A stretch of 64,000 nt of DNA, from positions 178,074-242,073 of the forward strand of contig NW_018408842.1 in assembly GCF_002113885.1 (NCBI RefSeq). The letters run 5' to 3'. The notes under the pieces were generated by a model, which was not told where the DNA came from, did not search any database, and was given only the letters and a program-made list of their open reading frames with translations. The position numbers and the translations under genes were made by a program. This DNA is from Mizuhopecten yessoensis (Eukaryota). Below, piece by piece: positions 4,265 through 50,086 of this stretch. Each line of letters starts with the position of its first letter. The first letter of the stretch is position 1.

Positions 4265-5732
4265 CTACACAGTAAAGATGCAGTGTTGCTAAAAGAGTTG
4301 ACGTATTGGCGGACGTCATATTGACCACGACACGAGATTAAGAGGAATCGGAGATAGTCTAGAAGTAGCTCGTGTTTAGTAAGATTACCCCGGTCAGGTT
4401 GATGTTGAAGTACTACCGAACTAACATGGAGTCGGAAAGTTCAAGCGATCTCTTTGTCACATAACCGATAGTAGCACAATTGTGTACGATCATAAATTGC
4501 TCAAAGATATTTTGCGATACGTTTTTTTTTCTTAGTTTCACTTACTTTGTCTTTGAAATAAAGATTATTTTCCAAATTTCCCTGGTCATAATGCCGCACC
4601 ACAATGTTGATATCCGGAGCCACAGACGACACCTCACACTTGACACTGTCCAAAGCTTCCTTTATCCTCGCTATGAGTACTATGAGTTAAAGTAAGAAGA
4701 AGAAGTTAAGGTAGTCACGAGTGAGTTTATTGCAATAAGAAATAAGCGAGATTCTCTGAAGGACACCGTTTTAGATTTACAGTGTAGATCAATGAAATTT
4801 TCGCGATAACGAATTAGGATTAGGAGAAAACATACTATTCGGAAATGTGCATAGATTCGGGAAATGGATAGAAGGGAAAGCGAGACCAATAGTGGCACAT
4901 TTTATCTCCCAGACAAAACGTTCTCTAAAGAGCTAGGTGACCGAAAGGGAAGAACTATAGCATTTGAGAACAGTTTCCCTTGACTGTTGAGACAAGCAGT
5001 AGAAAGTGATACCCTGTCATGAAAGTAAATAGGCAGGAAGGAAGTACAACACAATGCTCTGTATTTGCTACATAGATAAACAGTGTTTTTGCAAATGCAA
5101 GTGAAACATGGGGTCATCATAAAGCTCCACATGTAAACCTGTTTATTCAGAGTACAGCAAATGTTTACATGTATCAAGTATAAGACTATAATCTCATGAT
5201 CTTAACATAGAGAAAGGTAGACATGATAATATTTCGAGACAAGACAGAATGTGTACATGCTGCAATTAAGCCGAAATTGAGTTGAATTCCATTTTTTACT
5301 TAAATGTCCATTTGATTCAGATTTACGTCAAAATTATATTAAGATTTTTTTTTTTTTTATCGAAAACCTAGTATATTCAAGCTAGTTCACTTATTAAGTG
5401 TAAACAATGTTAAAGAATAAAATAAACCGGGAAAATTTGTACATTTGACATTCAAGGAAAAAAATAATATATTGAAGGGTTGATTATGATATTGTTTAAT
5501 CTAAGCATGAAAACACTCCGTTATGACTCTCTCTCTCCGCTTGTTTATATTATTGTACATATTTATGTTTGTAGTTGCAACTTATGGGCCGCAAGGCCTA
5601 AGGAATAATGAACATTGAGTTAGGGGGAAGCTTAGCCCCAAACTGTAGTGCTATAGATCTCCCAATAAATATGCTGGCACCTGTAATGGCTAAAAAGTTT
5701 TTTTTTAGAAACATGTTTGGTTGTGCCGCAAA
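4265..5732 (-). pseudogene. SPR-like pseudogene A (exon 1 only; Ala-Arg class), split by a LINE insertion
   Basis: 4265-4689 and 5616-5732 align with exon 1 of the intact paralogs ([29 protein letters not shown]); start codon mutated, stops and frameshifts present. Confidence 0.85.
4690..5622 (+). mobile_element. Internally deleted CR1/L2-group LINE (ORF1 fragment plus ORF2 C-terminus and 3' tail)
   Basis: Decayed peptides LDLQCRSMK, FGNVHRFGKWIEGKARPIVAHF, EQFPLTVE..YPVMK (ORF1-like); SHDLNIEKGRH..RMCTCC..EFHFLLKCP..RKPSIFKLVHLLSVNN (ORF2 C-terminal zinc-finger region); 3' hairpin GGCCGCAAGGCC; TGAGTTA at both junctions. Confidence 0.75.
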
Positions 5733-8700
5733 TCTGCTATTTTATGCACCTGCAAACATATGTGATGTTATTCGGCTGTGATATATAACAGCATATCTAA
5801 TATGTGCCTTTATCAACGTTTATAGTAATATATCTATATTTTATATATATAAAAGCTCCCCGACAGTTGGGAACCAACGTGAGATATGAAGTGCAGAGAG
5901 AAGTGGTCCTACCTTTGCTATTGACAGTCATATCATACACTGTCACGTGTTCAAAGTCCAAAGGAGAAGTTCAAAAGAGTTGAAATAAAGGCAGTAGGTC
6001 AATGTTGTTCTCTGTATTGACCCTTAAATAGAATTATACAGGGCCTCACATAAGCCGGCTATTACCCTACATGTATATGTACAGTGGGATACGGCAACTC
6101 TTTGTGTTTCGATTTTCCGATGTCCCATGAAAAGAAGACATGGACAAACACACACACCTCTCCCATTGTGAAGGAAAGACCCATATGAGTCGCCTTTTAC
6201 GACTACTATATTCAGATTGTTTCATCGTTAGTTCGTACATCTTATGTATTGTACACCTTGATAAGCTTAACGTATTTAAACAAAGTCATGTTTATCCATA
6301 AACCGATCTGACATGATATATTATACTTCACTCTTCTAAGACGTGTCATTGAATTAACCAGATCCCACGTAGTTGGCCCGGGAGGATATTGGTCGGTCCG
6401 AGATATGGCCTATATACAGCTTGAAGTATCGTAATGGCAAACATATCCATTTCCCTGACAAGTATACGATGAATATGTATGTTTGTATAAAGACATACGT
6501 GTAGGTATGGTTGTATATACATGTACATTTCTATTGTTTAATGAAACATGCTTACGATATTCACTTTACATACAAGTTTACATCTACATTATGGTCATGG
6601 ACCTAATGGAATGAATTTTACTTAACAGATAGTTTATGCAGATATAAAGGCTGAAAGGTTGTCTCGTTCTCCTAAACGTTGACTCCATGTATTCCTCAAT
6701 GAAATGAAATAATTTCACGACGTCGGAAGGAAGATATCGATCGCAATGGGCACCTATTTTTGTAGCGTAATTATACATTCTCAACCTTATCTGATTGCCA
6801 TATCCATGCAAGGTACACATAGCATGTAAATGTATCCTAAATAACTAATTTGTTTGCAATTTAAATGTATTTCAACATTCTGGAACAGAAATGCGGATAT
6901 GTTCTACTGTAGTTTAAGGTTTCTTGGTTAAAAGAATGTCACTAGATTTTACGAGAACATACCTAAATTCCCTTATAAATACTTAGTCCAAAGCTCCTAT
7001 AGCAGATATTTGTATGAAAAGTTACAGTTAAAACAAAAAACATCAAAATGGGAAATTGTGACACCACCCAAAAGGAATGGGTGCACCAGGTTCTTTTCCT
7101 TTGGATTTTATTTTTTGGAAGAAACTAAGTTGTCTCCTGTCACACTCTATCCCATGTGGCTGTTGGTTATCGTATTGTGGAACATGCTTGTTTAAGTGGC
7201 TGTCTAATGGTTCATTAGTGTGTAAACTGGAAGTGTTCCTTATGGTTCCCACAGTGCGCAAGGCAGTTTTCCGCTCTTGAGTTTATACTCTAAACCAAAG
7301 TAGGACAAACTATGCAGTTGCAAACACCGCTTGAACAATGGTCGGTCGTGGTGACGTAACCATGTAAAGATTGCGACAAACCAGTACCGATTCGGTTACC
7401 AATTTTAGAATCTAGGCGCCATTTGTTACTGCATACGGTTCATGTGCTGATGGATTGGGGATGTACTTTTAGGACAACCATACTTGATTTGTCAGTCCCC
7501 AATCCATGCAGACATATGTGGCAGTAATTAGTCTAACTAACAGGTACAATTTACCAACAGTAACTGGCCTTACCTGGTATAGAATCATAATTAATATAAC
7601 ATATCAGCATGCTGTAATCAGCATCGGTGATTGTTTACATTTCAATATGCTGAAATCTGGACTGTATACCAGCATCTTGTTTACTGAAGTATAGGGATTC
7701 GCTATCTACTCATTCAGTTATATCATACAAACACATACGGATTGTATAGACGTTGCAATTTTACCACTTTACTATCCCATATCATATATATTTCATTTAC
7801 AGTATATATCTATTTTGTAACACTATTTAACAATAACATGAATTCTTTGTAACCAACTGATTACTTCCGGTTCATGTACACATATCCGGTTCAACACGTA
7901 AATTGGAATAACAACAGATGGTGGGACTTGATCTCATTAAGTGACGTACTGGATTGTGTCACGCAATTCAAAATGTTAGACCAGCAGTATACTAGTACTT
8001 AATACTGACAAGACTTACTCCAGTTCTCTGCCTAACAAAATTATTGTATGGGAAGCTTTCATTCAGTGAATTGAAAAGCCTCCAATGTTTTTATGGTATT
8101 AAGTGAAGTCTCTGTTGATATACATCTATTTGATGAAAAGAATCCATACCGTAGACAGGGAGAGGAGCATCAGACGAGACTGCTAAGCACTGCTGCTCCA
8201 TATAGATAAAATGATTGTATGGACTATGCAGTATCGTTGTTTAGTCCAGGGTGCAGTCATGTTAATTTGATGCTTTTGTTTACTCCTCAAAGGAGGCGTA
8301 AACGTAAAAATGGTCAATTGGATACAATGTAGCACTCGAAGACCTGACGGAAAGCCTGAAGAAACCGTTTGATAAACACTGTATTCAATTTGTAAAAACA
8401 AACAAAACATAACCAATGATCGAATATTGAACTTTCATTAACAAGGAGTGAGTGGAGGGATGTAAAAAAGCACAATTGCATTACTTTTGTTGATGAACAC
8501 CTAACAATATATATTTGATATTATTTCAAGGCAAATTGAGCTGTTTCGTTTGTACGACATATCATTTGATACGTTATACCATGGAATGCTTCACCAGCGA
8601 ATATTTACTAGGGAATATCTATCAACACAATTGTTTTGCCGAATTATAATACATTTTGAGCAGTAAACCCTCAGCCCATTCGATGTTTACATAATATGTA

Positions 8701-9439
8701 TTATTACACCGTTTCTCCGGTAAAACGACATAGCATTTCTGCATACATATCACAACTAAAAAATGGAGGGGGTATGAAATTAAAAACAAATTCCAGCTGA
8801 TGACCTGATGTATCAATATTGCAAAGGAATAGATTATGTTAGCTTTATAAAGATTACATGATTTTGAAAGTATTAAACACTTGAAAAATTAAGTTTTTCT
8901 TATTTTTCTATTAGTTCAGGAGTTCACATTGCATTCTGCAACATTCTGTTCTTGATTTCTAAAGCCATGGAGTTCTTTCATATACAACTAACAATGGGCA
9001 TTTAATAACATTTAGCAGGTATGTAAGTATAAAAACAGATAGGTGTTCCCTTATTTGCACAATGTTAAAACAAAGAATGTTAATAGATAAATGCTTTTCC
9101 ATATACTACGGTGGCCCTTACATATTCTCTTGTCTTTTGCTTAGTTTAGTCATGTAACTGAATATTTGGTAAGATATTTGTCAGTCCGACGTTGACTTAC
9201 AGCTATCTTGTATTGATTGATTATAAGCTTTTCCATGTTATGTTTTGTGTCTGTGCTAGGTAGCAGGTAATGTATGCCATTACATGACATTTTACTTGAC
9301 ACCGGTGATGGTATATCAAGTTTCATGTGCGTGTATTAGTGACGCATGTGCCGAGTTTGATCACCTGAGTCTAGAACACCGATGCATACATTTTAACAAA
9401 ATGCATGCCACTTCAAATGTATAAAGCCTAAAGTCTTAT

Positions 9440-49230: not shown

Positions 49231-49439
49231 ACTATCATTTAGTCAATATGAATCAAGTAGCAATAACAAAGAGTTAATGTAAGATTAAGATTTGTTCTAG
49301 CACAACTGCGATGTAACTATATTATGTGTGACTCGTGTTATCTGAATGAACTTTGACAAATGAGGACACACGCACGATTGATCATTTTACACGTTTCCGC
49401 ATTCACGCAGTTTACTTCAGAGGCAGTGATTGTTAACAA

Positions 49440-50086
49440 GAAAATAAGTTTTCGCTAGGTGACTTATAGCAATACATGATCGTTCACAACTGTGCTGGCA
49501 AAGGCATCGTTGGAACTTCGTCCGATTCCTTGTCAGTCCGGAAGTTCTTCCACGTCAACTTGACCTAAATAATATTATTTAACACGAGCTTCTTCTAGAC
49601 TTTTGCCGATTGCTAATAATCTCTGGTTGTGTTTCATATGACGTCAGGCGCCACATCCACTCCTTTTCCAACACTAAATATTTACCTTGCAGGCTACGTA
49701 CGATAATTAAAACACTCTCTGCTTACTTAGTAACTGAGCTGTTATTTTAAACAAATTTGCCAAAAACAAGAACGTTGTATGTTGTGAAGTAGCTGTTTCT
49801 TATAAGACTGTAGGCTTATTATTGCAACATGTTGTTTTTGCCTTGTGTACGCTATTGATTGTATTCAATGTTTGAACAATGTTGTTTATTACTTGTAAAC
49901 GTCAGATATGTTATACATACTACGTATAGGTAAGGCTGACCGTGACGTGTATATGCGTGTATTGGCCATAGATGGTCCTCGCTGAGTGTACTAACATTCC
50001 CATTGCGTTTCTTCGACGCGGGTATTGTAAAAACCAACTGAGACGACGTCAATGAACAAGTCTCTCATTTCTATTGAAGGGATAAT
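49440..50086 (+). pseudogene. SPR-like pseudogene H, inverted relative to the array (3' part of exon 1 and exon 2)
   Basis: QYMIVHNCA at 49470, VRKFFHVNLT*, NTSFF*TF, HMTS; donor mutated at 49693; exon 2 remnant AG|GTAAGGCTGACCGTGACGTGTATATGCGTGTATTGGCC from 49930; intron-2 motif conserved at 50108-50175. Confidence 0.85.

Follow-up and report, generated by a model that had tools for sequence, protein, structure and literature searches.

In most animals sepiapterin reductase (SPR), a housekeeping enzyme, is encoded by a gene that is close to single-copy, and the presence of a row of SPR-like genes in the scallop Mizuhopecten yessoensis raises the question of where these copies came from and what they do. 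The stretch of DNA analysed (64,000 nucleotides, C5515:178074-242073, hereafter the window) carries five SPR-like genes that are intact, consist of three exons each and lie on the minus strand, with three pseudogenes (A, B and H) interspersed and a HECT-domain gene at the flank:

4242..5729, minus strand: pseudogene A, exon-1 remnant found by tblastn, closest to P0005/P0004
9638..9841, minus strand: pseudogene B, truncated exon 1, residues 1-68 only
11788..14468, minus strand: gene C, exons 13934-14468, 12442-12594 and 11788-11906, 268 aa, spliced model identical to P0003
21426..23105, minus strand: gene D, exons 22571-23105, 21965-22117 and 21426-21565, 275 aa, model identical to P0002
28195..29990, minus strand: gene E, exons 29450-29990, 28794-28946 and 28195-28310, 269 aa, model identical to P0007
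34647..36296, minus strand: gene F, exons 35762-36296, 35114-35266 and 34647-34765, 268 aa, intact GT/AG model
39507..42176, minus strand: gene G, exons 41636-42176, 40106-40258 and 39507-39625, 270 aa, model identical to P0004
49377..50075, plus strand: pseudogene H, inverted exon 1 and exon 2 remnant at the array end
52794..54283, minus strand: last exons of a HECT-domain gene (Pfam HECT, E 8e-11), flanking the array and serving as synteny anchor

Four of the five intact genes (C, D, E and G) correspond to NCBI proteins titled "sepiapterin reductase-like", and copy F had no match among the annotated proteins returned. Pseudogene A was recovered as tblastn pieces at 4242-4535 (with three in-frame stops), 4510-4683 and 5604-5729; its exon 1 contains a frame break and an interruption of about 0.9 kb, and no adjoining exon 2 or 3 was found. 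Pseudogene B is 59% identical to copy F across residues 1-68, and pseudogene H shows 44-56% identity to the window genes and at least six in-frame stops.

The preliminary description of this DNA had counted at least eight genes. The five intact genes and three pseudogenes were confirmed, but the figure was a large under-count, as the whole array runs from about 62.4 kb to 228.1 kb of C5515 (~165 kb) and comprises about 18 loci, of which 12 or more are intact and six or more are pseudogenes or fragments; the window is its distal third. Transposon remnants and minisatellites lie between the array genes. Uncollapsed haplotypes or repeats joined wrongly during assembly could mimic such an array, and indeed the 207-kb stretch examined contains 17,759 N, the array copies located at 99 kb and 115 kb show 96-99% similarity, and SPR-like fragments occur on several tiny contigs. 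The window itself, however, holds no N at all, and its copies differ from each other by indels and by pairwise dS values of 0.20-0.59, which rules out the haplotype or assembly duplicates that had been named as a possible refutation. Four of the copies are, moreover, independent NCBI gene models, and the same kind of array is present in three other scallop assemblies, leaving an artefact extremely improbable.

Descent from SPR rather than from another SDR family, as first proposed, was borne out by sequence, fold and phylogeny. The best NCBIfam model for the array genes was TIGR01500, and the exon-1 products scored 43-50 bits against PF00106 (adh_short), for which the gathering cutoff is 26.6. 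Human and mouse SPR were the best matches both in a PDB sequence search (E 1e-41; next SDR 1e-10) and in a Foldseek search with copy D (E 1e-23, TM 0.81-0.90; next SDR 1e-15), in which the top 14 hits were all SPR and all hits were SDRs. AlphaFold2 models exhibited a Rossmann-type alpha/beta fold with the expected strand-helix order (pLDDT 95, pTM 0.92-0.93). In trees rooted on chordate SPRs, a scallop-only clade (support 99/98 in the careful tree) was nested inside the bivalve SPRs and contained the array clade (100/99), within which the window copies grouped with P0005 (97/95); a quick tree of 55 rows, rooted also on priapulid SPRs, agreed.

The genome also encodes a separate, canonical SPR, P0036, located on another contig (C3819), with the motifs HNAG and AHIDFFDD and grouping with oyster and mussel SPR. 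When whole proteins were scored against the TIGR01500 equivalog model, for which the curated cutoff is 206.55 bits, P0036 alone passed (243.0), the array copies ranging from 167 to 194 (P0040, 166.6; P0002, 169.9; P0003, 178.1; P0004, 181.0; P0007, 193.6). In all five intact window genes exon 2 measures 153 nt and both GT/AG introns are in phase 1 (splice phases 1/1). This uniform plan had been presented as a feature of the array, but it is not specific to it, since P0036 and its neighbour P0027 share the exon lengths (541 or 538, and 153) and phases of the array. Unlike the array genes, P0036 and P0027 have one or two relatives each per scallop species and are not arrayed. P0027 already has HNCA and the Glu found in the array copies, and from its sequence it looks like an intermediate step between canonical SPR and the array.

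The catalytic apparatus is preserved throughout the array. All five window genes have the Gly-rich TGxxxGxG motif (TGACRGLG in one form), and all copies retain Asn (DINLTGM), Ser (NMTS or NMSS) and Y-x-x-x-K; in an alignment of 54 sequences, from which copy F was left out, Tyr and Lys were present in 54 of 54 and Ser in 53. The copies thus have in common with human (1Z6Z) and mouse (1SEP) SPR the SDR fold, TGxxRGxG, the Asn-Ser-Tyr-Lys set, YCAGKAARD and the three-exon plan, and differ from them in falling below the equivalog cutoff and in several residues. After beta4, where SPR has NNAG or HNAG (HNAG or HSAG in the canonical bivalve SPRs shown), the window genes have HNCA (HDCA in copy C) and other scallop-only copies HNCG, HNCV or HNSA, which is a variant of the NNAG motif and not a loss of the fold. 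These HNCA, HNCG, HNCV and HNSA variants were flagged in named scallop proteins only, plus one unnamed fragment. Mammalian SPR contacts its ligands through Ser157, Tyr170 and Asp257, the last of which hydrogen-bonds pterin and sulfa drugs (PMC7520308). The equivalent of human Asp257, in the H-V-D-F-Y-D tail, is Asp in P0036 and in the listed named non-scallop SPRs except that of Tegillarca (Cys); it is replaced by Glu in C, D, F and G, by Gly in E (YVGF) and by Ser in P0009. The position of human Trp167, Trp or Phe in SPR, holds aliphatic or other residues in the array copies (Leu in G, Tyr in C, Val in D, Phe in E and Val in F), and it is mainly in the catalytic Ser-Tyr loop and the lid that these copies differ from each other.

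These changes bear on whether the copies are still pteridine enzymes, that is, SPR isoforms serving tissue-specific tetrahydrobiopterin or pteridine-pigment synthesis and kept for dosage or regulation. SPR descent, with the fold and catalytic residues kept, is compatible with such isoforms, as is the acidic residue at the pterin-contact position of most window copies; that residue is mostly still Asp in subclade B1 (P0040 type), and because Glu for Asp is a conservative change, the copies may still act on pterins. On the other hand, a canonical SPR is retained as the sole copy above the TIGR01500 cutoff, NNAG is replaced by HNCA or related variants in the scallop-only copies, the acidic position has become Gly in E and Ser in P0009, and the Trp167 position and Ser-Tyr loop differ among the copies where dosage models would lead one to expect conserved substrate pockets. 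We consider pteridine isoforms unlikely, while still the strongest competitor of the reading that we prefer, in which the array is a Pectinidae-specific, SPR-derived set of cytosolic carbonyl reductases diversified for non-pterin substrates; on the evidence of the sequences, we hold the latter to be somewhat probable.

Selection on the array was measured from its intact genes. Overall omega was ~0.35, and all intact pairs had omega values of 0.18-0.39 at dS 0.2-0.8, indicating purifying selection since duplication. Under GY94, omega was 0.25 for the core and 1.31 for the Ser-Tyr substrate loop, the latter from 12 codons only and obtained without a significance test; this loop was also the top 12-codon window of 275 (1.13 vs a median of 0.31). 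Relaxed constraint, as well as diversifying selection, could account for the value above 1. In the RNA sampled, splice junctions were detected for copy G only: in a contig from run X2 (depth 62), position 39625 is followed directly by 40106, the 480 nt left out being bounded by GT..AG on the minus strand, and the loose end of this contig at 40260 is consistent with the end of exon 1. Copy F was represented by one read pair, in exons 3 and 2. Its near absence from this RNA, the pseudogenes and fragments scattered through the array and the repeats between its genes are all what would be expected if duplication-prone DNA simply yielded redundant, decaying copies with no distinct function. Such neutral birth-and-death turnover would not, however, keep omega at 0.18-0.39 across all intact pairs, leave the catalytic residues invariant or allow both array subclades to persist across four genera, and we judge it rather improbable.

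The age of the array was addressed through its distribution and synteny. In a word-index search, a method that can miss distant kin, of databases holding only four scallop genomes, the array clade was found in Pectinidae only, in four genera, and all hits above 379 bits in a profile search were pectinid. Pecten maximus, Argopecten irradians and Ylistrum balloti each have members of both array subclades, and the P. maximus array, in L020, adjoins the same HECT gene, which is 71% identical between M. yessoensis and P. maximus. The two subclades in other scallop genera and the shared HECT flank show that the array is ancestral to scallops, with birth-and-death turnover since. The lineage-specific expansion postulated in the preliminary description therefore holds for the scallop family and not for this species, in which only the subclade of copies C-G and P0005 is Mizuhopecten-specific. 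Its pattern of intact genes, pseudogenes and species-specific subclades is that of birth and death, as had been suggested; an ancestral and widespread array, which had been set against the proposal, is found as far as the first part goes, but among Pectinidae only.

Clustering of copies by species within both subclades would also result if an old array of fixed size were homogenised in each species by gene conversion, mimicking species-specific expansion. Synonymous divergence is indeed low at the start of exon 2 (0.19-0.25 in its first 24 codons vs 0.4-0.6 elsewhere), and conversion may have contributed to the species-wise clustering. As a full account, concerted evolution is nevertheless very unlikely: the species have very different numbers of copies in each subclade (Mizuhopecten, 2 in B1 and 10 in B2; Pecten, at least 6 and 3, respectively), the pseudogenes have not been homogenised, and the sister copies D and F (dS 0.20, omega 0.34) look like whole-unit duplicates, with introns and 1 kb of flank aligning at 84%.

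A further change concerns the cofactor. By a published rule, NAD(H) is specified when the residue immediately following beta2 is acidic, and NADP(H) when it is basic (PMC2792337). Arg46, after beta2, is present in 50 of the 54 aligned sequences; it is missing in C and D (and in F, outside the alignment) and is Pro in P0032/P0033, which belong to a different scallop subclade from C/D/F. Copies E, which keeps ARN after beta2, and G have both NADP(H) determinants, the Gly-motif basic residue and the post-beta2 Arg, whereas C, D and F keep the Gly-motif Arg, lack the post-beta2 Arg of SPR and carry Asp at the tip of the strand. Copy C reads VLMDILP at this point with the Arg gone, and in the AlphaFold2 models Asp45 is the last beta2 residue of copy D, where copy G has Ala45-Arg46-Asn47. 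Pseudogene B reads VLMEILALE, sharing a two-residue deletion and the acidic residue with the C/D/F subclade. Sequences and models together suggest that the cofactor preference of this subclade, which is confined to Mizuhopecten and comprises C, D, F and pseudogene B, has probably shifted towards NAD, although the prediction is mixed because the Gly-motif Arg is retained.

We infer the substrate range, cofactor preference and physiological role of the array copies along the following lines. An ancestral three-exon SPR gene would have undergone whole-gene DNA duplication to give the array, with canonical P0036 retained for tetrahydrobiopterin synthesis. The array copies, which look like catalytically competent SDRs with the Gly-rich dinucleotide motif and Asn-Ser-Tyr-Lys kept, are altered where mammalian SPR contacts pterin or inhibitors, and C, D, F and pseudogene B have additionally lost the NADP-specifying Arg and carry an acidic residue at the beta2 tip. 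Their substrates may be dietary, xenobiotic or endogenous carbonyls, an extension of the known carbonyl-reductase side activity of SPR, whose substrates include quinones, dicarbonyls, aldehydes and ketones (PMC7520308). In a bolder version, C/D/F would have recently switched from NADPH to NAD(H) and be able to run oxidatively, and the array would transform carbonyl-bearing dietary algal compounds such as saxitoxin-class toxins. We regard this as improbable, and its algal part is speculation from chemistry: the conserved acidic residue might bind the guanidinium group in the way it binds the pterin ring, with the hydrated ketone of the toxin undergoing reduction. The algal idea has one observation behind it, the up-regulation of an SPR gene, among others, in the gill of Chlamys farreri after 15 days of exposure to toxic Alexandrium (PMC9324277). 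A parallel comes from Nasonia, in which three NAD+-dependent SDR genes, lying in tandem, diverged from one another and with a function specific to their lineage, reportedly lie behind a sex-pheromone difference (PMC5050451); these genes are not SPR-derived, and the likeness is one of analogy only.

Our claim is a modest one, as the genes already carry an SPR-like annotation; we found no paper describing this SPR-like expansion. Bivalves commonly have tandemly expanded families of detoxification-type enzymes. Scallops keep SPR plus 4-12 derived intact paralogs per species (at least 12 in Mizuhopecten) under purifying selection, and the graded series from P0036 through P0027, B1 and B2 to the C/D/F subclade makes the array a compact natural experiment in which an SDR substrate pocket and, apparently, a cofactor determinant change over short evolutionary time. 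Action on dietary or toxin carbonyls, if true, would bear on the tolerance and transformation of algal compounds by scallops, and on shellfish safety.

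The window contains no N, and six-frame ORFs combined with tblastn located minus-strand first exons of the short-chain dehydrogenase/reductase (SDR) type at five places, together with three degraded pieces. Gene models were obtained by testing combinations of GT/AG splice sites on the most similar annotated proteins, with the following result:

Gene C, minus strand: exon 1 13934-14468, exon 2 12442-12594, exon 3 11788-11906; translation exactly that of P0003
Gene D, minus strand: exon 1 22571-23105, exon 2 21965-22117, exon 3 21426-21565; translation exactly that of P0002
Gene E, minus strand: exon 1 29450-29990, exon 2 28794-28946, exon 3 28195-28310; translation exactly that of P0007
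Gene F, minus strand: exon 1 35762-36296, exon 2 35114-35266, exon 3 34647-34765; intact, 268 aa
Gene G, minus strand: exon 1 41636-42176, exon 2 40106-40258, exon 3 39507-39625; translation exactly that of P0004
Pseudogene A, 4242-5729: three stops, a frame break and an interruption of ~0.9 kb
Pseudogene B, 9638-9841: first 68 codons only
Pseudogene H, 49377-50075, plus strand: many stops

These models and inspection of the pseudogenes bore out the five intact three-exon genes and three pseudogenes of the preliminary description. The four annotated products (P0003, P0002, P0007 and P0004) carry the NCBI name "sepiapterin reductase-like", and the product of gene F had no counterpart among the annotated proteins returned; only exon 1 of F was used in the database searches, its joined protein being used in the tree and in the dN/dS analysis. 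Exon 2 measures 153 nt and both introns are in phase 1 in all five intact genes. Several repeats lie in the window: a 145-bp satellite at its start (268-1674), a 45-bp minisatellite located between C and D (18495-19263), and a 47-bp minisatellite (31971-32309) whose overlapping ORFs (109-137 aa) are misleading. A Tc1/mariner-type transposase remnant (25806-26640, plus strand) lies between genes D and E and is split into two ORFs, which match HTH_Tnp_Tc3_2 (E 2.5e-8) and DDE_3 (E 2.6e-6, slightly below Pfam's cutoff).

RNA evidence was sought at positions 34600-40300, and the two raw RNA runs barely cover this locus. A contig from run X2 joins 39625 to 40106 at a depth of 62, with GT..AG borders on the minus strand, which is the exon 2/3 junction of G, and from its loose end, at 40260, the contig runs on into the end of exon 1 of the same gene. 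Gene G is spliced; for gene F, a single read pair was found, on exons 3 and 2. At 38384-38421, X24 reads and X4 contigs matched over only ~38 bp, with unrelated sequence on both sides and a depth of up to ~410, and this segment looks like a short repeat that is also present in some other element, either highly expressed or multi-copy.

The exon 1 products match the Pfam family adh_short, and the NCBIfam equivalog model for sepiapterin reductase (SPR), TIGR01500, was by far their best NCBIfam model. When P0004 was compared with the PDB, human and mouse SPR chains were found at E ~1e-41, the next SDR appearing at 1e-10. AlphaFold2 models of P0002 and P0004 (pLDDT 95, pTM 0.92-0.93) were likewise matched by Foldseek to SPR chains in the top 14 positions (E ~1e-23, TM 0.81-0.90), with other SDRs at 1e-15. 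As family models, PDB and fold searches all put SPR first, the genes descend from SPR, and an origin from another SDR family is ruled out.

A separate canonical SPR, whose existence the preliminary description had proposed to check, was found on contig C3819. This protein, P0036, has an HNAG motif and a C-terminal AHIDFFDD, and in both resembles the SPR of vertebrates and other bivalves; P0027 is encoded ~8 kb away, and further loci of the family are P0071 on contig C690 and a fragment on C3755. Against the curated equivalog cutoff of TIGR01500 (206.55 bits), P0036 passes with 243.0 bits, while the array proteins score 166.6-193.6, P0027 187.6 and P0071 156.4. By this cutoff P0036 alone is a sepiapterin reductase and the array genes are SPR-derived paralogs. 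The exon 2 of 153 nt, which had been described as invariant in the array, is indeed present in every intact gene modelled but is not specific to it, as P0036 and P0027 have the same plan (541 or 538 nt followed by 153 nt, phase 1/1). Exon 2 was therefore inherited, and the copies arose by duplication at the DNA level; retroposition is ruled out by the presence of both introns at ancestral positions in every copy. A plan of three exons is likewise that of the human SPR gene.

The tandem array of at least eight SPR-like genes proposed at 4265-50086 is real, but the window shows only part of it. An assembly-wide six-frame search, with tblastn on 207 kb, detected ~18 loci with exon 1 similarity from 62.4 kb to 228.1 kb of contig C5515, in orientations that alternate by block. 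Intact genes modelled outside the window are those of P0005, P0009, P0006 and P0040 and an unannotated copy at 99 kb, all with an exon 2 of 153 nt, and P0065 is a further annotated intact gene of this contig. The array thus comprises no fewer than 12 intact genes, with six or more pseudogenes or fragments, counts that are lower bounds because 17,759 N occur in the 207-kb stretch. Exon fragments similar to SPR are also carried by very short contigs (C65637, C20913, C64217, C52278, C69665 and C4330), which may represent array sequence that was left unplaced, or else alternative haplotypes.

Pairwise dS ranged from 0.20 to 0.59 among the window genes and reached 0.83 against other array genes (the B1-type P0040, described below, excluded). 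The window copies are therefore distinct, and the haplotype or assembly duplication that the preliminary description had named as a refuting outcome is ruled out for them by dS values of at least 0.20. Genes D and F can be aligned at 84% over the two introns and a further 1 kb upstream, and E and G across their introns (~70%), a pattern that would be expected of whole-unit duplicates. Two intact array genes outside the window, at C5515:99325-101967 and 115227-117895, are 96-99% alike (dS 0.07, omega 0.29, 11 amino-acid differences), and the same gene fragment lies ~6 kb beyond each. This pair is probably a young tandem duplication of ~15.9 kb, though it may have been doubled in the assembly.

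Pairwise omega ranged from 0.18 to 0.39, with a global GY94 omega of 0.35, values showing that selection acts on the genes; F against D gave 0.34, although F matched no annotated protein. In a scan with 12-codon segments, the loop that separates the catalytic Ser from the catalytic Tyr (Ser-Tyr loop) ranked first among 275 (pN/pS 1.13, median 0.31), followed by the lid. Partitioned GY94 analysis gave an omega of 0.25 for the core (189 codons), 1.31 for the Ser-Tyr loop (12 codons), 0.51 for the lid and 0.60 for the C-terminal tail, and amino-acid change is thus concentrated at the SDR substrate-binding region. The value of 1.31 over only 12 codons may reflect either diversifying selection or relaxation. 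In the first 24 codons of exon 2 (40187-40258 in G), synonymous divergence between paralogs is 0.19-0.25, against 0.4-0.6 over most of the gene, which could be due to local gene conversion or to RNA-level constraint.

Two phylogenies agreed, a careful one by maximum likelihood (45 proteins) and a quick one (55 proteins). P0036 was grouped with oyster and mussel SPR, as were its orthologs in Argopecten and Ylistrum, and the remaining scallop proteins formed one scallop-only clade, with careful-tree support of 99/98. Within it, clade A contains the P0027 and C690 types, with one or two genes per species, and the array clade (100/99) splits into B1, of the P0040 type and including P0065, and B2, both with genes of Mizuhopecten, Pecten, Argopecten and Ylistrum. 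Mizuhopecten has two B1 and 10 B2 genes, and Pecten at least six and three, respectively; C, D, F, E, G and P0005 form a Mizuhopecten-only clade (97/95). In a profile search of a 5.8-billion-protein collection, all matches above 379 bits were pectinid, canonical scallop SPR scoring 338 and other bivalves at most 310. A motif scan flagged HNC[A/G/V] and HNSA in scallop proteins and one unnamed fragment only.

The B1 and B2 genes of Pecten maximus lie at 13.61-13.70 Mb of one chromosome, with a HECT-domain gene adjoining the B2 end. In both Pecten and Argopecten, the counterparts of the genes on contigs C3819 and C5515 are located on a single chromosome. The ortholog of this gene is found in the window just past pseudogene H (52794-54283, minus strand) and extends toward 64000; its introns contain long minisatellites (57638-59003, 59119-59734, 61169-61513 and 61743-63293) that coincide with strong negative GC skew. 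The occurrence of the array clade in four scallop genera and the HECT synteny indicate that the array is syntenic and ancestral to Pectinidae, where birth and death of its genes continues. The expansion that had been proposed as lineage-specific was found in scallops only, but its ancestral position within Pectinidae goes part of the way towards the outcome named beforehand as counting against that claim.

The TGxxRGxG motif, the catalytic Asn and YxxxK are kept in all sequences, and the catalytic Ser in all but one. In the window genes HNCA (HDCA in C) replaces NNAG/HNAG, and the same or a related variant occurs across the scallop-only clade. Asp257 (human numbering), an active-site hydrogen-bond partner in the human enzyme (PMC7520308), is replaced by Gly in E, by Ser in P0009 and by Glu in the other four window genes, and is mostly kept in B1. 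Human Trp167 corresponds to Leu in G, Tyr in C, Val in D and F, and Phe in E, and the position that aligns with Phe-99 (PMC7520308) is already Ala in the canonical scallop SPR.

At the cofactor site, Arg46 (P0004 numbering), after strand beta2, is present in 50 of the 54 SPR-family sequences, from mammals to priapulid. The exceptions are C, D and the clade A proteins P0032 and P0033; F, outside the alignment, has the same sequence as C and D. The sequence is VLMD(I/V)LP in C, D and F, against VLMARNS in E and G, and in the AlphaFold2 models, in which beta2 spans residues 40-45, the last residue of the strand is Asp45 in D and Ala45 in G, followed in G by Arg46-Asn47. Pseudogene B also has the deletion of C, D and F, with Glu at the strand-tip position, so the change is older than the C/D/F/B split. 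In SDRs, specificity for NAD(H) is set by an acidic residue that immediately follows the second strand (PMC2792337), and a cofactor switch in the C/D/F subclade is probable from sequence and models. As the Arg of the Gly motif is kept in these genes, they are predicted, with uncertainty, to lean more toward NAD(H) or to accept both cofactors. Arg after beta2 is also absent from another scallop-only, SPR-derived subclade, single-copy per species (P0071 at C690:333143-338600 and its orthologs P0069, P0033 and P0032; FLSPDH / FLSPRN / FLSPSN); the site that determines NADP use has changed there a second time, independently.

SPR substrates include quinones, vicinal dicarbonyls, aldehydes and ketones (PMC7520308). 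The simplest interpretation is that of a canonical tetrahydrobiopterin gene accompanied by a carbonyl-reductase array with one cofactor-altered subclade: P0036 would keep the tetrahydrobiopterin role, the array would extend the carbonyl-reductase side activity of SPR by diversifying the substrate pocket, and one young subclade (C, D and F) would also have altered its cofactor determinants. Because an acidic residue persists in most copies, pteridine-related roles of array members may also be considered. The sole physiological pointer found is a hint from Chlamys farreri gill, where an SPR gene was listed with the oxidoreductase genes whose expression was raised at day 15 of exposure to toxic Alexandrium minutum (PMC9324277). 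Our literature search found no paper on SPR expansion in scallops or bivalves. The array genes are already public as "sepiapterin reductase-like", and a lineage-specific tandem SDR expansion is a known kind of event, to which the scallop array adds a retained canonical copy, a stepwise loss of the residues that mark SPR, and a probable switch of cofactor.
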